From: Dimorphilus gyrociliatus
Lineage: Eukaryota > Animalia > Annelida
NCBI GenBank assembly: GCA_904063045.1
Contig: CAJFCJ010000030.1
Coordinates: forward strand, 1-64,000
Direction of reading: 5' to 3'
DNA: 64,000 nucleotides
Shown: in pieces, positions 28,682 through 43,600 of the stretch
How the letters are laid out: the number at the start of each line of letters is the position of its first letter
How positions within the stretch are numbered: the stretch's first letter is position 1
Translations under genes and position numbers: made by a program
Notes under the pieces: model-generated
What the model was told of the DNA's origin: nothing
Seen by the model: only the letters and a program-made list of their open reading frames with translations
The model's database searches: none

Positions 28682-29051
28682 GATTTTCTGATAGTATTAA
28701 CTAACTTCATATTTGATTATTTGTAATTTATATCTGGTTAAGCTAACTGAATAAAATAGATTTGATATTTATTTCTTATAAATAAGCAGCATTATTTTAG
28801 AAAACAAGAAAAATTTTGATAATAAATGTGAAAGAAATAAAAAAGAAATTATTAAAATTTTGTACAGAGTTCTTTCATTATGAAAATGAATTATAATGAT
28901 AAAGAAGTCTGTTAATCTTCCATGCCTGAAATAAAATTTTTATCCTTGCTTTCAATATCTTTCTTTGTTATTTGTTAATTTATTAAATCCTAACCTGTTT
29001 TATGGAGAATAAAATGATAGTCTAGGTAGAATGTGATAATAATAATATTAA

Positions 29052-29065
29052 ACAATAGATGGCGT
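29052..29065 (+). promoter_or_regulatory. CTCF-like motif ACAATAGATGGCGT
   Basis: Partial match to the CTCF core, downstream of the paralog cluster. Confidence 0.4.
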
Positions 29066-31446
29066 ACTCTAGGTAACTTTCTTTATAATGTATTTATAAA
29101 AAGCGAAAGATTGTCAAAATTCTATCAACTTCAAATGACAGTATCTACCTTTCGTGGACTGGTCATAATAGTTTCTATTTACATATTTTTTATTTTTTAT
29201 TTGAATATTTAAATAGTTTATTGTTTCTTTAATCTAAATCCATTTTTTCATAAATCATGATTGCAATTCTAGTCGGAGATGTGTGTAGCTTTTTCATCTC
29301 TCCCTTTTATTTCTTATTAAACTTTTCAATAATTTTTTCAATTGTCTCCCATAATTTTCAGCAGGTTTCAATTCTCTAAAAAAGACAAGTCAGAAGAGTA
29401 GTAGAACAGTCAAATCTATTGTATTAAAACTCCACTTGATGATCTTTGCCTGGTGGCAAGACGAATATGTATCCAATTAGCATTTTCTCAGCAATAAATA
29501 GTAAAATCTCGTTTTGTAAGAGATTCAAGTACCACATCTTTGTGTTTTTTCGGTATTCTTCATATAAATAAGGTACCATCGAGAAGTAAGGCATTTTTTA
29601 TGTCTTCGTATAAAATAAACATATTTTTTTAATTAATTGAAAGAGTAAAAAAAGTAAAAAGCGCTAAAAATAGGTTTTGCACGAAACCATTCATCCGCCA
29701 CCGATTAAATGTTTCTTTACATGTATTGCAGTAATAAATATCGGATCCTACTTTGTTTTCTCCAACAAAGAGTCAAGTTGTTTTGAATTTTTAGACATTA
29801 AAAGTATATCGCATACTTTCCTCATGTTTATAGTTACATGGTTCATGGAAAATAGCACTCTTACTTATCAAATTGCCTTGGGTAGAGAAAATTAATCCGG
29901 AATAATCTTTCGTATCACTAAGCATGAATTTCTTGCATCAGTGAAATAGGCATGCTTTCCTCAACAACATCCATACTTTGTTACAAAGATTTCAATAGAT
30001 AAATCACACATATGTTTGTATGCAGTAAATTTTGCTGTAAATAGAAATATATGATAATTTAAATCTTTATCAAAAAGTATTAAATATAATTTATTATAAA
30101 AGTTACGTAATGTAAATATTATAGAGAAAATATCTTGACAAAAACTGTGCTTTCATCATAAAATTCAGTCTGTCAAACTGTTACACAAATGCAAAACATC
30201 AATCAATTAGCATAGTTTTCTTTTTCATTTGCTTGTCAAACTCTTATTTGATAAATCTTATCACTTTCCTTTATTTTATGTTTTTTTTTTGTAGGATAAC
30301 TAGATAAATTTATAGATACATTATCAATTAAATAGGTTTTTTCCAAGTAATCTAGATAATCTAGAATGAATTATAGATTAATGTTAATTGTTACAGATTC
30401 CTTAGAATATGTAACATATAATTAATGTATTTTTTTATTATCAAATTTTCCCTCTACGCCCTATGAAAGTTATAATTCATTTTTATGTATTTGATTGTAA
30501 TTGGTTGTATTTCTTTTCGGTAACAATGCCTAATAATTTTCTATTCATTGATAATAATACGCTTTTGTAGGGTTTCCCAATGTTAACTCTCCTTCTTCAA
30601 TATCAACCATTCTTTTAGACGCTACTAGAAGAATAAACACTATTTAAGTACAATATAACCTAAAGATAACTTTGATACTGTATTAAAAAGAGAAAAGTAG
30701 AGATAAAGTGAAAATTATCAACTAAGACAAGAAAGAACTTAACTGTATGTATGGTCTATGTATTGATTATAACAATTTCCATTTTGTTTCTTTTTCATTG
30801 GCAAAAAACATAATTCAATTCGTTTGATTGACACAGCATGATTATTCTTATTAATTTTTTGATAAATACCTATATCTTGCTTATAATAAATCAATACAAG
30901 TGTTTGTAAATTTCAAAATATAAGAAATCAAAAGAAAACCAGATTTCCTCTTCTAGACTAAATAAATATGATAGAATAGATTTACTATATCTATATTTCT
31001 ATTTTTGATTTTCTATTTCTTTCGTCCCGTTTCTTTTCCTTCCTGTAGCTATATTTTTATTTCCTTTTTTGTTTTGTTTCGCAAATTAATGAAAAAAACA
31101 CCCAGGAAGTTAAGTATCACACACCTAAATTATTAAGTCTTATCATAAAGGAAAAACTAATTAATGCAATGGTTATTTAGCTTGTTTTTTTTTTATTGAA
31201 ATGAAATCTAAAGTCAGCATTCTCTTTAATCAATATAATACTATTTACGTATTCTTTTTCTCCTTCATTATCAGATTAGATTCTCTCTTTAATTGAAAGT
31301 ACTACTAAAATCTGGTTATATAGGTATAATCATATATATATATAATTAATATGTTGATGAAGTAACGTTCCTGATATCATAGAATATTAGTCATAAAGTA
31401 ATAAAATTCATATTTTATACATAGTCTCACGCTAGAACATAAGTAC

Positions 31447-31487
<41 letters not shown>

Positions 31488-32247
31488 CTGTAAATTATAC
31501 TGAATATAGCATATTCAGCCACATTTTATTAAATAACATATAGCAGTTAATCAAAGTCAATTTGAATTATTTATGTATTTATTGTGTTTTTATATTCATA
31601 TTGAAGGTCTTATTTTTTTTTCTATGAAATATTAGCTTTTTAAACAGAACTATAATATTTTATGGCGAATAATGGTACACAAACATTTATTCATTGTATA
31701 TTTTATATATATATATATATACTGTATATTTCTCTCATGAATATTAATGAGAAAAAAGTAAGACAATTATGCAAAACAGCTGAGAAGCTAAAACAAAGGT
31801 AATAAATATTCTTCTGTTAATTATTAATTTGATAAAAATAGAAAAGATATGATTACTGTTCTGTGTTAGTTTTCTAAAATACCTTAATAATTTCAGCTTG
31901 TTTTACATCTCTATAGTTTGCTTCTTCTTTCTCTCTCTCCCCCTCTCCCTCTCACAGTCTTTGTTCTATCATTTAATTTAAAAATCTCCAAAATAAAAAT
32001 ATTTTAATTTAAAATAGGCCTTAGATCATTGTAAATTTTGCAAAGAAAAAAGAACTTAAGGTCTAAGCGATACAGCAAATAAAAGAAATTTGCATAATAT
32101 ACTTAGTTAATGTAAAAAAAATAATAAATTTTTTTAATGAAAGTTTTTAGCTAATAATAATATTTTCTTTTTAAATGTCTTTTTTATAATTAATCTATTT
32201 TCATTGGTAAATTTTAACATAAATAACAATAGAATTTAAACGGATAT

Positions 32248-32313
32248 AAGATGGCGCTGTTTTGTAGGAAATCTTCAGAAAAAGAGACGATAACTTGCAA
32301 ATTCAAGATGGCG
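32248..32313 (+). promoter_or_regulatory. Two YY1-like AAGATGGCG motifs, the second overlapping the predicted start codon
   Basis: AAGATGGCG at 32248-32256 and 32305-32313. YY1 motifs are known to lie near the TSS and start codon of housekeeping genes. Confidence 0.5.
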
Positions 32314-35300
32314 ACTGGCCAGGAATCAGGTTAATTTTGTGAATTTTTTACTTCTTTGCCATTATTTTTAGGTGTTATTGCTATAAATAATTACTAAAAG
32401 ACAACTAAGGATGTAGTTTTAGTGTCCATGGGTACTCGTTGCAGTTAAATACAAAAAAGTTATTGTTCAAGTCATCATCTTTGTTCTAGATCTGTAATGA
32501 AAACATTTATAAAGTATTAGTTTTTCATCAATTTCTATGTGAAACAGCTGGCGGCTATTATGTTCCTTGGTATCAGCCACCTGAAGTTAGTCAGCATATG
32601 TTCACGTATGGCAATTACGCAACATCGTTGGCTTCCTCAAGAACGCTTACTCAAGTTAATACCCAACCAGCTGATTTATCAAGAACGAATACACAAAATA
32701 TTATAACTAATGTTTCGATCAACAATTCAAATGCGGTTTGTACCACTTAATAATAGAATTATACCTAAAAATATTTGATTCCTTCTCTAATCTTTCATAG
32801 CAATATCCACACATCGCCAGTACCGCTCAATCGGAAGCGGTTGTTAATCTAACAGCAGTTCAACATAATCAAGATACAAATAATGCCTGGCATCCTTATA
32901 CCCCTCAAACGCCTCTCCTTACACCGTCCGTTAATGCCATCAACTGCTCTGAATTAACAACTATAAATAAAGCAGCTCTTGAGCTGACTCAGGAAAAACA
33001 TGTGCCCATTTCACAAGCGAACCCTGTTGTCTGTTGTGCTTTACCGACTGACTGTTCGCCGAAAAAGTCAGTTAAGCCCCTAAGAGATAATCAACCACTA
33101 CAAGCCGTCCAGACACAACTTTTGTTTTGTTCTTCTTCAGAAGATACTACGGGATTGGATGCTATCGTAAAAGTCGCCTTCAACCAATCCTCATCTAGCA
33201 CATGTACTCCTACTGTATCAACAACAGTTATACCAACTCCGGCTGCAGTTGGTACAAAGTATGATCAAAGTAGTAGTCAGATAGATAACTCAACAAAAAA
33301 TGGTAAGAGGCGTAAAACAACTAAACAAGCTGTTGGTGAATTAAACTGGAAGAGAAATCAGCGAAAGATTCTTAGGAATAGCGGTAAGGCCTATACGAAT
33401 ACTTCTGGCAAGTTAGTGACCGAGAAAAAATTTGCTGAATACGATTGCCGATGTCCGTTAAAATGCGCAGAAAATATACCACTTTCGAAAAGGAAAGCTG
33501 TTTTTGATTCTTTCTGGAATTTAGGTGATTGGGCTAAACAAACTAGTTTTATTCACAGTAATATCGAAGTTATCCAAAAGAAAAGAGCGTATAAAAAAAC
33601 GGAATCCAGGCGAAAATATACAAGAATCTTTAAATTATGTGAAGTAAGAATTTGTAAGAAGATGTTTACTCAAACTTTATCCATTAGTGATTCAAGATTA
33701 CATAGAGCTATTGCTCATAAACGACCTGGGGTTCATCGACTCCCAAAATCTGATTTAAGAGGGAGACATCAGCCTCATAATAAACTGCCTGAAAATATTA
33801 TCGAATCCATAAGAGAACATATTAGAGAACTACCCAGGAATATGGTCAGGGAGGTTCGCCAACAATTACAAGCTGCTACAAAAAAAGTACCCAATACAAG
33901 TGAAATGACAGTTACCCGTTTATACTCCAATTATAAGGCATTCTGCGAGCAACGAGGAATTGCGCCTGCCAAACAATGGATGTATAGGCATACTTTTCAT
34001 ATGGTTGTTGACCCAAGACATATAAATAAATGTACAAGATGTCAGGTTGAACAAAAACGGAAGCTGCGAGAACAAGAAAAACAATGCGCTCAACTACCGG
34101 AATTTGCTGGCCTTATACAAAACACAACTATAGTTTGTAATAAAAACGATGAAGAATCTGCTCAGCCATTAGACTTAACTCATGCTAGCCCTGACGATCT
34201 GATTACTCAAACTATACCCCTATTAGATCAACAACAAGCTTATTCACTACCGGGAACGATACCCTCCACAATGCCAGAACCGGTTCAACCTTTCGCTCAA
34301 ATTCAACCAAATGAAGTAGGTAATCCCAATGCAGGGATATTGTCAGTAGATCTCTTGGCTGAAAATGGTCATGAAATCAAATCAAAGAATAAGAAAGAGT
34401 GTAAGGAAGACAAAGAGAAAATGGAATTTCTGAGAAATATTTTCCAGGATAAAAAGAACAAGCGAAAACTGCTTAGAAATATCGGTGCTTCTTATGTTAA
34501 TTCAGCCGGTCGACTGATCGCCGGCAAGCAATTTAACGAAAATTTCAATTGCAATTGTCCTTTGCATTGCTCGAATAAACTGGACAACGAAGACCGACGA
34601 AGAATATTTGAAGAATATTGGCAACTAGGGGACTGGGACAAGCAAACGGCTTTTCTTCACGAGTCAATTGAAGTAACAAACATCAAACGAAAACAGAAGA
34701 AACCTGATTCAAGGAGAAAGCATACTAGAGTCTTTCGACTATGTGGAGTTAAAGTATGCAAAATGATGTTTATTAATACTTTAGGGATCACCAGTGCTAG
34801 AGTAAATAGAGCCGTTGACCACAAAATACCTGGTGTCGAGGCGGAACCAAAGAGAGATCAAAGAGGTCAACATGCACCTCACAACAAAACAGATCCAGCA
34901 GTTATTCTACATATTCGCAGACATATTCAATGCATTGGAGCTAGCTCTGGAATGGACACGTCGCGAATGTATCAATTATATTATACTGATTGTGAAAAAA
35001 TGAATGTTAAAGCTGCCAAACTATGGATGTATCGCCAAATTTTGAATACTGAATTTCGTGTTGAAAGACAAGCTTACTTAGATGCTCAAAAAGAAGGGAA
35101 ACGCAAAAAGAATGAAGAGGAGGCAATGAGGAACCAAGGAATGACTTCACTACAGTCACAAACACCAAACTACACTCAACAGCATCTCATGCCTTCGAAT
35201 GAACAGCAACAATTCTCTACGAATGCCATTCAACAGCAATCACTCCAGTCGATAGACGGCGTTCAGGTTGTCGTCGACAATAGAATGCCGCAAGAGGTTA

Positions 35301-35464
35301 TTATACCTCAGCAGCGGCAGTTCGAACAGCAGCCGGCTATTGTCGACGCTAACGGCCAACAGCTTAACTATTTCCTACTCTGCACAGCTCCTATTGACGG
35401 ACAGCAGCAAGTTCAACCTCAAGCGAATGAAATTCTTCAAACAGTAGTCCCCTTACATCATTAA
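32308..35464 (+). CDS. Nuclear protein with two transposase-derived Cys-rich DNA-binding repeats and Q/P/T-rich low-complexity regions, about 957 aa, 3 exons
   Basis: Exons 32308-32329, 32548-32735, 32801-35464 join in frame with the 820-aa ORF. Internal repeats at about 33347-33997 and 34451-35060 share RK.LRN.G..Y.N..G, C.CPL.C, F..(F/Y)W.LGDW.KQT.F, CKxMF..TL.I...R, D.RG.H.PHNK and WMYR. No DDE/DDD catalytic core seen. Confidence 0.8.
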
Positions 35465-35959
35465 AAAAAAAACTGAAACTAGTCACAGAAAATTTGTAAG
35501 TAGAGAATTTTCTTTACCAATACTGAAAAAAGATGCATGCCTTTACAGACTCGGTCGATTCTCTTTAAAAATAACTTCAATAAAAATCACTTTGTAATAA
35601 TAAAAAAGTATTTTTTTTCTTTTTTGTTATTTTTTTTAAGAAGTTTTATATTAATATACATTCTTCGTTCAATCTCGTCTTTTCTTTATCAGATTAAGAC
35701 ACTTTATAAAATTGAGTTGTTGTTGTTAATAGGATTGGATTCGAGAATAGCATTCTCTTTTCTCTGTAATGAAGTATTCTTAGTTTGAATTCATTTAAAT
35801 CTCTTCAATTCGTTTGATAAGAATTACGTAAAGTATTAAGCGGAAGTTGGGAAACTTCTTACTATTTGACATAATTTAACAATATAAATATAAACTGTAT
35901 CAAATATATTCTATAACGAACTTTGGAAAAAAAAAGCCGTTTATTACTACCTTCATCAA

Positions 35960-35973
35960 ACGCTAGATGGCAC
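35960..35973 (+). promoter_or_regulatory. CTCF-like motif ACGCTAGATGGCAC
   Basis: Matches the CTCF core and is identical over 15 nt to the site at 6333. Confidence 0.55.
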
Positions 35974-36560
35974 GTCCATCTCCGTAATGTAACAATCTTA
36001 CAATGTAATAGTTCAAGTATTCTAGGAAATTTCTAAGCAAGAATACAAAAACCAGATACAAAGATTTCTGATTATTTTGAGAATAGAAAATAGAACAAAG
36101 GGAAGAGAGAAAGAATAATGAAATACTGTTATTGCTTTAAAATTCGTTTAATAGAAAAAATAGGGAGTGGTCCCTTATTTAATTTCGGTTTTGATTTCGG
36201 ATATTAAACCCCCTTTTGTCTTCGTTATTTAAATACATTGAGGAATAAATTAAATTGAAAGAGAAATTACCGCGTCCAAGTTCATTAGAATTTAGAATTG
36301 TAATTGAACGCCGATTGTCCTGGGAAAGCGGAAATTATAGTCGTCATCTAAAATCCGCTAAATCGTTTTTGCCGAGTGCTTAAGTGATAAAAATTCGGAG
36401 TAATTGGCGACTAATTTAAAGGTCGTAGTAACGTTAACTTTTCAAAGACAATATTACCTTTATAATAAATGATATTTAATTATTTCCGTTAGAACAGATG
36501 CGTTATCTATATTCTGTATATAAATGATGTAGAATCGTTTTAACTACGCCTTTCGGGATC

Positions 36561-37126
36561 ATGAAGTTCCTGGTGTTGTTTGCTATAATTTTTATGTATT
36601 TTAGTCAAGTCCAAGGATTTTCAATTCGGGTAAAGTCTATTTAATAACAAAAATAAGATGATCTTTTACAATCCACTCTATTTTTAGGAAGTCCTGTCAA
36701 GGAAAGACAGCGAAATGAAACGAGATAATGGTAATAAGAATTCCTCAAAACCTGGATGGATCTATAGTAAAATTTAATTATAAAAACTTTTATTACTCGT
36801 GAGAGAAACTCTAATGCTAAATTCTTTCCTCTTTTTTCCTCTATTAACAAGTGATGGGCCATCCAACAACTAAAAGAACAGACGATACCGACGCAGAAAA
36901 GGATATTGAAGGAAAACAACTTCTTCAAGACTTCCTAACCTTCCTTACTTTAAAAAGTAAGCTTTTTAAAATAAAGGAAAAAAAATCATTTAAAAAATAT
37001 TTAAATGAATTAATTAAAAAATAGGAGAAAGAGTGAAAGCTAAAGAATTTTATTACAGAATTTAACCTTTTCCAAACAGATACAGGCCTATTGGATCCTT
37101 GCATGCCAAAACAACCGAATTCTTAA
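36561..37126 (+). CDS. Small secreted neuropeptide precursor with galanin/GMAP-like features, about 99 aa, 4 exons
   Basis: Exons 36561-36629, 36688-36766 (alternative donor after 36730), 36852-36956, 37080-37126. Product: MKFLVLFAIIFMYFSQVQG-FSIREVLSRKDSEM-KR-DNGNKNSSKPGWIYMMGHPTT-KR-TDDTDAEKDIEGKQLLQDFLTFLTLKNTGLLDPCMPKQPNS. Signal peptide and dibasic sites flank one peptide. Absent from the ORF track because the exons are short. Confidence 0.7.
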
Positions 37127-37498
37127 AGGAAAATAAACTTTTTTTTTCAACTATGTGTCCTGTGTAGGCTGATAGAATCTGCAAAATAAATATGTATATA
37201 CATATATACATATATATATATCTACTGTATATATTATATATGTACTAATATATATTTATATTACATCTAATATAAATGTTCAAGTTAAAACGAACATAAT
37301 TATCTTATATAGTTTAGAAATAGGTTAAAAAAAAATAACAAACAAACAAACAGCTTTAATCTTGACGACGTTACGATTCTTTTAAAAGGATTTTAAGAAA
37401 AAGTAAAATTTAAAAAAAGATCTATTTGGGTCCAAAAGTTTCTCTTCTCTCCTTCTACGATCTTCTTGTCATTTTTCTTCATCGGTACATAATTAACA

Positions 37499-39320
37499 AT
37501 GAGATTTAAGACTTTACGATTTCTTCCAATACTATCTATTATAATGATCGTTTGGATATCGAATATATTGAGTTCTAGACCTGAATCAAATAGGGATAAA
37601 TCTATAAAGTGGGCATTATACTACTTCGATAATATTTCTTCAACACCGGCAGCTGAACTAACGAAAGAGCTACCAGAGCCAGATAAATTAGGCAGATACA
37701 GTTACGTACCAATAGAATATAGGTTAGATACGTAATTAACTAATTGAAAAATTCGTTACTTTTGTAGAGGAAACCGTAAAAATTAGTTGTAAAAATAAAT
37801 AGTCTTCTTTGTATTAGATGCTTTTGTAATATAACGAAAAGGAAATTCTCTATTGAATGCCAAAGTCATCCTGATTATGCAAGAGGTTTTAGATGGCTTT
37901 GTAGACCTAACTTAAATTTACTTAGAAAGAAAGAGATGCATATTTCGTGCACTTCTAACAGAAATCAATCTTCTTTATTCGACATACGTCTCTTTAAGGG
38001 TCTAAGCTTTAATATAGACATTGGATACTGGGTTAAGAGTAGATTTTGGATTCACGATTGCTCTAGGAATACTATAGTAATAAACGGTAGAATGAGAAGA
38101 GGTCCAAATAACGAACCACCAATTATTTATCTTAAAAATACCTATTGGCCACCATGCGGTCCATTAACAAACCACGAATTAGACGTAAGCAATAATAATA
38201 TTACGCAATCTTTGTTTTAATCAACAACTGTGTAATAATCTTCTTCTTTTTATATAACCCTAAAGATTTCTTACGAAACAACTTCCAACTTTGCAAGATA
38301 TGTTGAAACTATGATGGTAAATACTGCAGACATTTACAAGGTCGAATTGGAAAGGTTATTCTCTTATTCTTACTGCCATGATGATCTTAAACCAAAATTT
38401 CAATACATTCGAAAGATTTTTATAGAATCTCAAGAAAATTTCAAAAAAGTCTTCCTCTTTATCATTTCAGATAAAACGGTTGAAAGTAATAAAACTATAA
38501 ATAAATCTTATTTAAATTGGGATAAAGTTGAATTAATTAGAATTTACGGCGTTTTATCATTGGAAGCTAATCATTTAAATGATGAATATTTCATTTCGAA
38601 AATTACTAATAAAGTAATCTGTCAGCGTCTAATTTACAATAGGGACGACTGTACGAATAAGGTCTTTATATAATCAGCCTAATTAAGGGGTTTATATTCA
38701 ATTATCTCATTTCTATTTTTAGATTATTAACCTTCTAATCGAAAAAAGTTCGCCTGTTGTACACTCTGCAACATTTGGTTATATAACATGGTGTCAAGAT
38801 AATACTGGATGGTTAATGTATCGTTACGTGTTTGTTGAGTATACATATGTAGAGTTTCAAAGGAGAATGGAATGTTGTGCTAAATCCTGCAGAGTAAGAA
38901 TGGGTAAAGGTAGATTCGAAGATGGATTTTGTAATAAAGTTAGAATTAGGTCAATTTATGAACGTAGATTAAAAATGATCTATAGTAAGGTGAAATTTTC
39001 TCAAAGAGCTTGCGAATACGTTGGCGATTGCAGTAGTTGGTGGAGTGTGTAAGTATATATTTCTTAACAGCAGCAAACTTTTTCAGTATGCACAAAGCGT
39101 TTCTAATGAAAAAAGAAGGAATAAAAAGTGTTTTTTTTTATTTCTTTGCAGCAGGGATACAGTCGTTGCTAGAGACGCCCTTAGTGCTCACCTTGATGCC
39201 AATAGACGAAGAAGGTCAGAGAAGGGGATTTTTTTTAGTTGTGCAACAAGATCAATATTATCTATCTATATATTAATAATGCTACTTGAAATTATAATAT
39301 GTAATTTTACAGTTTTATAA
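37499..39320 (+). CDS. Uncharacterised Cys-rich cell-surface/secreted protein with N-terminal signal/anchor and hydrophobic C-terminal tail, about 493 aa, 5 exons
   Basis: Exons 37499-37722, 37818-38184, 38266-38661, 38723-39048, 39152-39320 link five ORF-track ORFs in frame. The donor at 38662 (GTCTTT) is weak, so exons 4-5 could belong to a separate model. Confidence 0.6.
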
Positions 39321-40603: not shown

Positions 40604-43600
40604 TTAAGGTGGTACGTAGGGAGGTGGTTGACGACTTGGAGCAGGTGGTGAAGGCCTTTGACCAAATGATGAAGTTCCACTGCTAAATGTTGATGGACGC
40701 ATATATCTACCCTGATCAGGATCAGTTTCTGGTGGTTTTTCGTTGGCCAAAATCAGAGGTTTTGTTACTGATTGTGGGTTATCGTCAAGTTCGTCAGCAA
40801 AAATGACCGGTATACCTTTACTCACGAACGTTTGTTTATCGGTTACACTCATTTTACCTTTCCTTTTAGCTCTGTAAAGGATACAAGCAACAATTGCTCC
40901 AAACAGCAGAACAAACGCTATCAAACTTGATGCTATTATAATTGTCAAAGTTGTTTCAGTGGCAGCGGGACGAGGTGGTTTTGTTTTTTCAATCTTATCT
41001 TTTACTACAGCAACTTCTAACGGCTTTAAATCATACCCAAGAGAACATTTTCCAACAGCTTGAAATGAGAATAACTTAATATCCCACGGTCTCATTGCTC
41101 TCAAAAAATCCTTCCTAACAACACAATTTATCATGCCAGGTTCGCAGTCAACCATTTTTAAAATATTTCTCTTAATACGGCGGACAGGACAGGACGTACG
41201 CTTCGACATTTCAGCTATGGAACCATCGATGGAACTATCCCTCCAGGTGAAAAGAACAGAGCCTCTACGAATTTGCAACATTCGAACTGTATTCTCTCGT
41301 TCTTTTGGATGTAAATATTTACTTATTTTCTCTGCCAATTCAACTCGATTTCGACTGCCTCCCAATCTAAAATCTTCAAAATTATAATCGATAACAATAG
41401 AAAATTCGTGAGTTGTATATTCTTCTCGAGGAGCCTTTTCAATATTAACAAAAAATGTAGCATGTGCTACTTTCCCACCCTTATCAACAGCCGACAATAT
41501 ATACCCGATCTTAGCATGATCATCTTCCGTAGGCATACCCCAAAGAGTTTGATTTTCTTCATCTAATTGTAACCAGTGGATCGGGTCTATTTCCCAGTGA
41601 TCTGCACTTTTCAACACTAGCTGTAAATTTCTAGTAGTTCCCTCTTCGATATCAGAGAATGCGTTTTCTGGTATGAGATAACGAAACACCTTTCCAGGCA
41701 TGGCATACGGTAAATCAAATTTGTTAAAATCAGGACCAAGAACTGGGTTATTATTGAAAGGCGTTGTTGTCTTCTGTGTAGTGGAACTTGGCTTTTCTGT
41801 AGAAATCGGGGCAACACTCTCTAGTACAACACTAGATGACATTTCCTCTTCGGTAACAACCGCTGTAGGCCTAATAAGATCGATATCTTCAACAGATACT
41901 GTAGTGCCCAATGTAGTTTTTCTTGTGTGATCGCAATGGTGATGTCGGCATTTGTGAGTACTTGCTGAGCCAGAAGTAGTAATTATTGATGGACTCGTAG
42001 TTGGCCATTCAGGGCCCGATCCTTCGATTTCTTCATTATTTTTAGAAGATACAATATTACCATTTTTATTATTGTGTCTAATTTCTCTCCTCCTCCTTTT
42101 TGATTTCACAACCTTAACATTATTTACGGACCAACCTCGGATATTTCTACCGAGTATTTTAGCTAGAGTACCATTTTTTGCTAGCTCTCCTAAGCTTTCC
42201 AAATATTTTACGTGCTTTGCACGAACTTTCCCACATCCGACACCCCAGGATAGAGCGGTTCCTTTGCCGGCGTCCAATGAGAAAACGTTTCCTGGTCCGG
42301 AAATTAAGGACTCGCCCAGTAATTCAGAATCGTCTCTTCTCAATAAAGAAACATCTCCAGTGGAGATATTCAAATGGTGAGCTAATTTCTTTATTAAAAG
42401 GTAGTCGTTCGAGACCACTTCTTTCTCAACAGCATCTAATACAATTTTAACCATTGTAGATATTTCAGGACAATCGGTTTCGGGTTGAAGGACGGCTATC
42501 GTAAAGACGTCATGAGCTTTTGATGACGACCCGTGAGCATTTACATGGACGAAATGTTGACGGGTGTCTGTTAATTGCGGAACGCCTTGCAAAATTTTCG
42601 AGGTAGCATTGTACTTTAACCATCCCGCAAGAGGGGAAGTGGAATTTTCAGCGGAACGAAACTGAAGTGGAAATAAATGAGTTTTATATTATTTGACGTA
42701 TAGTCAATAAAGTTCAGTTAAATATATTTCGAAAACTCTCAACGAACGTTAATTAACCGACAGATAGTCTTCCGTGATTATGTGCTTTATCAGGCGGAGA
42801 TATTTCAATCATCAAATGATACAATTCTCTCTATATTTCTCATGTTTTTCTATGAGTAAAATCTTTTGAAGTACCTCTTTTGTGAATAGCTAAATAAATT
42901 AGATTTGATATTTCTAGATTTTGAGTATAGAAGAAATTAAATAGACTTATGATTAATATATACATATATGAAAATAGACTGAGAAAGGACTAGACGTTTG
43001 TCAATTTTCTTCAAGGTTACTTAACTTTTTTATGAACAAAGTTGGAAATGGTTTTTTAAAATGTTATCCTTTCGAAATACATAAAAAATAAGTCAAAAAT
43101 CGGAACCGAACTAAAATTAATTAGAGATTTAATTAATATATGGTCAACAATATAAAACCGCTTCCAGATAAAATCGAAGATCGTCCTAAGGGGAGTTGTT
43201 GGCTAGATTAAATCATGTCGGTTGTATTAGAAGATGGGAAACGCCCCAGCACGTTTTGTTTGCTGGGCGAACGAAAAGAGAAAGAGGCAAAATTTACTGT
43301 GCAACTACTAAAGCCATTACAGAATCGTAAGCTCGTAGCACGAACGAATAAACTACTCGGGCCAGCGTAAACATAATTAGAGCGAGAAAGCCGTTGTGGG
43401 GATTAGTCTCGGTCAAAAAAAAAGCCGCCCTGCAATGTAAAGTGAAGGGAGCGTAAGGCAAGAAGGGCAAATTTTCTCGTGTTTGTTCACTTTTAACATT
43501 AGAACACGATACCTAATAAATTTTTATTTGGTATCGTAGAATTAGTTTAAATCTAGTATAGAAAGACGTCTTTCATTCTCAGTTATTTAAACAAAAAGGT

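Follow-up and report, generated by a model that had tools for sequence, protein, structure and literature searches.

The miniature annelid Dimorphilus gyrociliatus possesses a real, expressed and unannotated gene for a secreted neuropeptide precursor of 99 residues. The gene is probably homologous to the one that encodes the vertebrate galanin/GMAP precursor (GAL), although divergent from it. A protostome galanin-type precursor had been proposed in a first-pass annotation of this DNA, and that reading is now supported, with caveats, by a GAL profile HMM and its shuffling controls, by a match to the Pfam GMAP family and by the positions of the introns. The 21-residue mature peptide of the precursor (the 21-mer) is itself not a canonical galanin. 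No earlier report of a protostome galanin/GMAP-type precursor was found in the full-text literature, nor was a paper that prints the sequence of this precursor. All positions given below refer to the window, that is, the whole 64-kb stretch of contig CAJFCJ010000030.1 (assembly GCA_904063045.1) that was analyzed, which has a G+C content of 31%. A 336-residue open reading frame of the window is annotated on that contig at matching coordinates, and 21 kb of the record are identical to window positions 17671-38681. The G+C content, the compactness of the genes and the marine RNA runs are consistent with D. gyrociliatus. The public annotation of the contig has no genes called in the 10 kb between 28682 and 38681, and the list of neuropeptides published for D. 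gyrociliatus does not include the precursor. The gene is therefore both unannotated and uncatalogued there.

The gene is located on the forward strand and consists of four exons (36561-36629, 36688-36766, 36852-36956 and 37080-37126, the last being the coding part), with GT..AG borders throughout. The spliced open reading frame of 300 nt encodes 99 amino acids and is closed by a stop codon. In order, the introns are of phase 0, 1 and 1, and the final base of exon 2, like that of exon 3, is the first base of a codon that the following exon completes. Exon 1 encodes the signal peptide (residues 1-19) and the first residues of the N-terminal propeptide, and is followed by a 58-nt phase-0 intron (36630-36687). 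Exon 2 completes the propeptide and continues with the KR site at 36718-36723 and with 14 residues, DNGNKNSSKPGWIY, from the N terminus of the mature peptide. The second intron (36767-36851; 85 nt, phase 1) splits the mature peptide, the end of which (MMGHPTT) is found in exon 3 together with a second KR site (36872-36877), an acidic spacer and QLLQDFLTFLTLK. The third intron (36957-37079; 123 nt, phase 1) splits the codon immediately following the K of FLTFLTLK, and exon 4 supplies NTGLLDPCMPKQPNS and the stop codon.

The splice joints of the gene were read from public RNA contigs aligned to the region 35600-38400. The contig of run X10 is identical in sequence to the window and has a depth of 374. 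Run X11 represents a variant strain, whose coding differences amount to one synonymous change and one Glu-to-Asp replacement, and run X1 is a marine metatranscriptome. The joints 36629/36688 and 36766/36852 are present in all three runs. The joint 36956/37080 is present in X10 and X1; the X11 contig stops within exon 3. The four small exons that had been predicted to splice in frame to a precursor of about 99 residues, with phases 0, 1 and 1, are thus confirmed at each of the three joints by spliced RNA. Two donors, after 36730 and after 36766, had been considered for exon 2. The RNA contigs use 36766; the donor after 36730 is used in none of the runs.

Read from its N terminus, the precursor is predicted to comprise a 19-residue signal peptide, 14 residues of propeptide, a first KR site (residues 34-35), the 21-mer, a second KR site (residues 57-58) and a C-terminal peptide of 41 residues. 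The KR-flanked 21-mer, the acidic spacer and the segment QLLQDFLTFLTLK-NTGLLD, all described from the sequence earlier, are present. Judging from established prohormone processing, the signal peptide would be cut off after VQG, a site predicted from the hydrophobic core, a V at position -3 and a G at position -1. Prohormone convertases would then cleave both KR sites, and a carboxypeptidase would trim the basic residues. The predicted 21-mer, DNGNKNSSKPGWIYMMGHPTT, is encoded at 36724-36871 in a region broken by intron 2, and ends seven residues after its Tyr (YMMGHPTT). It is predicted to be released in a non-amidated form because the KR that follows is not preceded by Gly, and its G-W...Y-M-M-G-H-P core would lie behind a 10-residue N-terminal extension, so that GW is not at the N terminus of the released peptide. 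Human galanin is also non-amidated. The second product would be the 41-residue C-terminal peptide, which is acidic and amphipathic and carries the FLxFLxLKxxGxLD GMAP core and one conserved Cys. The GMAP-like core, QLLQDFLTFLTLKNTGLLD, is encoded at 36917-37096 in a region broken by intron 3.

Three genomic copies of the gene from close relatives (L001, L002 and L003) were reached via P0001 and P0002, two near-identical exon-3 open reading frames from Logan and ENA metagenome contigs. The coding sequence differs from that of L001 at 21 synonymous and 6 non-synonymous positions, giving a pN/pS of 0.07; identity to L001 is 84-95% in the exons and 65-72% in the introns. The 21-mer is invariant in L001 and L002; the part of it that exon 3 encodes is unchanged in L003 as well. 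Both KR sites are invariant wherever they are readable among the relatives, and the GMAP-like core is invariant in three lineages. The precursor coding sequence is under purifying selection: the low pN/pS and the intact frame in the compared lineages show that selection acts on the protein. The second intron varies considerably in length, being 345 nt long in L001 (4654-4998 of that sequence) and 85 nt in the window. The extra sequence is common to L001 and L003, and the intron has either shrunk or grown between close Dimorphilus-like lineages.

When the precursor is compared with all 24,736 Pfam models at E<=10, its sole match is GMAP (PF06540), with an E value of 0.0023 and a score of 18.5 bits, the curated cut-off being 25. 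The match spans about 20 residues, aligning precursor residues 75-94 to profile positions 30-51 of 61. Galanin (PF01296, with the conserved N terminus GWTLNSAGYLLGP) and Spexin (PF15171, NWTPQAMLYLKGAQ) have no match in the precursor at E<=10. A local GAL HMM was built from 100 full-length sequences out of 120 tetrapod and coelacanth galanin precursors that were fetched. It recognizes residues 72-92 of the annelid precursor with a score of 12.7 bits (E 5e-6, for one comparison). This score is reached by one in 100,000 shuffles of the whole sequence and by none of 100,000 shuffles of the tail. Shuffling within the hydrophobic and non-hydrophobic classes, which keeps the amphipathic pattern, produces the score in 2 of 100,000 cases. 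The best score in the rest of the AT-rich window, examined as 2,514 six-frame chunks, is 4.7 bits. The GMAP-like segment therefore stands far above shuffled amphipathic helices, the control by which the likeness was to be judged.

The profile comparison program hhalign gives a similar result, with a local P value of 2.3e-5 and a probability of 76% for an alignment that covers residues 72-92. The global hhalign alignment is collinear, bringing together the signal peptides, K-P-G-W and K-R-G-W, Y-M-M-G and Y-L-L-G, the KR sites, the acidic spacers and the cores. The tetrapod core reads R-T-(I/V)-(I/M)-(E/D)-F-L-(T/S)-(F/Y)-L-(H)-L-K-(E/D)-(A)-G-A-L-D. Of the 14 positions that run from D/E to D, the annelid core agrees with the tetrapod consensus at 11, among them the near-invariant F, L, L, L, K, G and D, and the register of FLxFLxLKxxGxLD with GMAP is as it had been proposed. 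A loose likeness of YMMGHP to YLLGPH had been noted at the same time. Y-M-M-G aligns to Y-L-L-G; PF01296 is not matched, and the spacing from W to Y is different. All that is kept from galanin in the 21-mer is G-W, Y, two hydrophobic residues and G.

The introns provide a second line of evidence. The genomic loci of rat and barn-owl GAL each have one GT..AG exon solution that reproduces the annotated protein, and the two genes share four coding introns, of phases 0, 1, 1 and 1. The same exon layout has been described for human GAL in a review (PMC12811797). The first GAL intron, of phase 0, is found after residue 27 and before (T/A)KEKR; the first annelid intron, also of phase 0, is found after residue 23 and before the KR at residues 34-35, and thus corresponds to it in position class and phase. 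The second GAL intron is a phase-1 intron in galanin codon 14 (GWTLNSAGYLLGP/H). The annelid mature peptide is likewise divided by a phase-1 intron, which follows Tyr (GWIY/MMGHP), whereas that of the vertebrates follows Pro (GYLLGP/H). In the hhalign alignment the annelid intron is four codons upstream of the vertebrate position. The mature peptide of spexin is likewise encoded across two exons (PMC6593056). The third GAL intron, of phase 1, lies in the N-terminal part of GMAP and has no counterpart in the annelid gene, in which the spacer is much shorter.

The fourth GAL intron is of phase 1 and lies within the codon that immediately follows the K of FL(S/T)(F/Y)LHLK. The last annelid intron, of the same phase, interrupts the codon after the K of FLTFLTLK. 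The borders are AAA G/gt..ag/AG in both rat and barn owl and AAA A/gt..ag/AT in the annelid, and the last intron is therefore at an identical position and in an identical phase within the aligned motif. By our estimate, the chance that one of three introns in 299 positions falls on that exact nucleotide is about 1%. This match is evidence independent of the sequence score. The GAL phases, which had been proposed to equal those of the annelid gene, hold for both the rat and the barn-owl genes. As to positions, the claimed equivalence is exact for the intron after FLxFLxLK and stands for the phase-0 intron after the signal peptide, but the intron in the mature peptide, although of the same phase, is displaced by four codons.

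In its overall plan the annelid protein resembles preprogalanin, having a signal peptide, a short propeptide, a basic site, a GW peptide, KR, an acidic spacer and an amphipathic core. The two share the core (D/E)FL(T)FLxLKxxGxLD, and in each a phase-1 intron divides the mature peptide, at positions four codons apart. The differences are also considerable. The annelid precursor is shorter, 99 residues compared to about 117-124 in preprogalanin. The peptide core is GW-I-YMMGHP, whereas that of galanin is GWTLNSAGYLLGPH, the spacing from W to Y being five residues shorter in the annelid. The pair of residues before GW is K-P instead of the K-R of galanin, and the 10-residue extension precedes GW in the annelid only. 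Finally, one coding intron of the vertebrate gene is missing. In GALP a galanin-like core is found behind an N-terminal extension, which recalls the annelid 21-mer, and spexin has a W...Y-L-K-G skeleton. We know of no GMAP core in the precursors of either spexin or GALP.

The allatostatin-A (AstA)/buccalin precursors are similar to the annelid protein in being secreted protostome neuropeptide precursors, the products of which are possible ligands of the same receptor group. They contain many short peptides ending in Y/F-x-F-G-L/I-amide (PMC12509031). The annelid gene, in contrast, encodes a single peptide that is predicted to be non-amidated, has no FGL/FGF motif and carries a GMAP-like tail. 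The AstA precursor of D. gyrociliatus in the published catalogue is a multi-copy protein with repeated ...KFAGFGKR units and is the product of a separate gene. Both genes therefore coexist in the species.

At the receptor level, buccalin/AstA is treated as the protostome counterpart of galanin signaling, although the ligands have no similarity, and orphan KISSR-like receptors exist in lophotrochozoans (PMC12509031, PMC5818035, PMC11004728), one of them in Aplysia (PMC12509031). Felix et al. proposed that the AstA receptors share an ancestor with the kisspeptin receptors and that lophotrochozoans have separate GALR-like genes (PMC4489612). Because the tail motif and the intron positions of the annelid gene match those of vertebrate galanin/GMAP, a galanin-type gene may exist in protostomes beside AstA. 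A step further, which falls somewhat short of an even chance in our judgment, is that the galanin/GMAP precursor gene is older than the protostome-deuterostome split and survives in annelids beside allatostatin-A. If the gene does predate that split, AstA/buccalin would not be the peptide-level orthologue of galanin, and a galanin-type ligand would remain to be matched to the GALR-like or orphan KISSR-like receptors of lophotrochozoans. A GAL-type gene beside AstA in an annelid offers a concrete candidate for that ligand, and receptor pairing makes the question testable. It is possible, if rather doubtful, that the 21-mer acts on a G-protein-coupled receptor of the galanin/allatostatin-A/kisspeptin group. 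The 64-kb window contains no receptor gene.

The function of GMAP in vertebrates is, to our knowledge, still poorly understood, and the annelid gene suggests that it is GMAP that has been conserved from ancient times. If the gene is indeed older than the protostome-deuterostome split, the part of the precursor with the deepest conservation, and hence with functional importance, would be the GMAP core and not galanin. The GMAP-like helix might be retained because it is bioactive in its own right, as a second peptide, or because it assists sorting or processing. In a stronger form of this argument, the gene is a GAL homologue in which conservation and function belong to the GMAP-like C-terminal peptide and not to the GW peptide. 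The helix might then serve in sorting or processing, as a ligand or as an antimicrobial, and the 21-mer may have no action on galanin-type receptors. The GMAP core is indeed the only part of the annelid precursor that sequence-profile methods align to the vertebrate proteins, its sequence does not vary among the three annelid lineages, and the spacing of the galanin pharmacophore is not retained. Antifungal activity and weak galanin-receptor binding have been reported for GMAP in a review (PMC12811797) and also count in favor of the GMAP-like peptide as the functional product. However, the 21-mer is just as invariant where it can be read, and the KR sites that flank it are conserved, so that we consider this restriction of function to the C-terminal peptide unlikely.

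Homology to GAL, whichever product is the functional one, has to be weighed against the improbable alternative that the precursor is a lineage-specific (dinophilid) orphan, whose C-terminal amphipathic helix has an accidental or convergent likeness to GMAP and whose intron matches by coincidence. The similarity extends over about 20 residues and is below the curated Pfam threshold, the mature peptide is not recognizably galanin, and many windows were scanned, which entails some multiple testing. Given the many windows, peptides and families involved, the sequence score and the exact intron, if taken alone, could have a chance origin. Relatives of the gene were found in Dimorphilus-like DNA only. 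A word-indexed search of 5.8 billion proteins with exon 3 and a full-precursor profile returned only the close-relative open reading frames P0001 and P0002, and an exhaustive search of 1.84 billion proteins with exon 3 alone returned one of these two and two low-complexity acidic matches. Scanning JGI metagenome contigs with exon 3 gave no matches, and the ESM Atlas gave only noise with exon 3 and only generic chordate neuropeptide clusters with rat GAL when the Galanin-domain clusters were left out. These protein and metagenome searches thus revealed no homologue beyond the three close Dimorphilus-like lineages. The blank is weak evidence, because such searches are poorly suited to short (34-99 residues), unannotated, intron-split eukaryotic genes. 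The neighbors of the gene in the window, a WD40 protein, dystroglycan and CSTF3, are presumably not neighbors of GAL in human, and we take 64 kb to be too short for macrosynteny. Against the orphan origin, a sequence score of this size arises by chance in 1-2 of 100,000 shuffles, those that keep the amphipathic pattern included, and the intron is on the exact vertebrate nucleotide, for which the chance is about 3 in 299 by our estimate. Collinearity with GAL extends, furthermore, to the GW...YxxG peptide with a basic site on either side, to the division of the mature peptide and to the phase-0 intron after the signal peptide. A chance origin is unlikely because these further features accompany the score and the exact intron.

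Transcription of the peptide gene starts from a TATA promoter of its own. The TATA box, TATATAAA, is at 36517-36524 on the forward strand, the mapped 5' end of the cDNA being 29 nt downstream of it. The transcription start and the 15-nt 5'UTR occupy 36546-36560; an adaptor abuts position 36546 in an X11 contig, and we take it to be a template-switch (SMART-type) adaptor and hence the mark of a capped 5' end. The 81 nt of promoter and 5'UTR (36480-36560) are 100% identical to those of L001, compared to a difference of about 35% at synonymous sites, which suggests that this stretch may be a densely constrained regulatory block. At the 3' side the RNA contigs reach 37165 (X1) and 37181 (X10). A candidate poly(A) signal, AATAAA, is present at 37185-37190 and an earlier one at 37132-37137; either may be used.

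Upstream of the promoter, on the same strand, is an 820-codon open reading frame (33002-35464). The X10 contig is unspliced and continuous from this frame into exon 1. An X11 contig has a loose end at 36533 that matches positions 35473-35495 of the window exactly, which gives a joint of 35495 to 36533. The corresponding alternative intron (35496-36532, GTAAGT..AG) connects the 3' end of the upstream frame, at position 35495 and 31 nt past the stop codon, to an acceptor 28 nt before the ATG of the precursor. The upstream frame and the peptide gene could be joined by read-through or belong to a shared transcription unit. The continuous X10 contig and the spliced X11 contig might be taken to mean that the four exons do not form an independent gene but belong to the upstream transcript, as exons that are alternative or 3' untranslated. 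This is extremely improbable, since the gene has a dedicated TATA box, a capped cDNA 5' end at 36546, a fully conserved promoter and an intact frame with a pN/pS of 0.07, and a contig that runs over two genes is no proof of a single transcript.

Rfam and tRNA scans of the 64-kb window gave no matches. The annotation-empty interval 28682-38681 holds the 820-codon open reading frame as well as the peptide gene, and that frame is conserved in L001 as a called gene of 830 amino acids. A single uninterrupted open reading frame of 662 codons (40604-42592), on the opposite strand and 3.5 kb beyond the peptide gene on its downstream side, covers most of a dystroglycan gene; it matches Pfam DAG1 and, just under the cut-off, the alpha-dystroglycan N-terminal domain 2.
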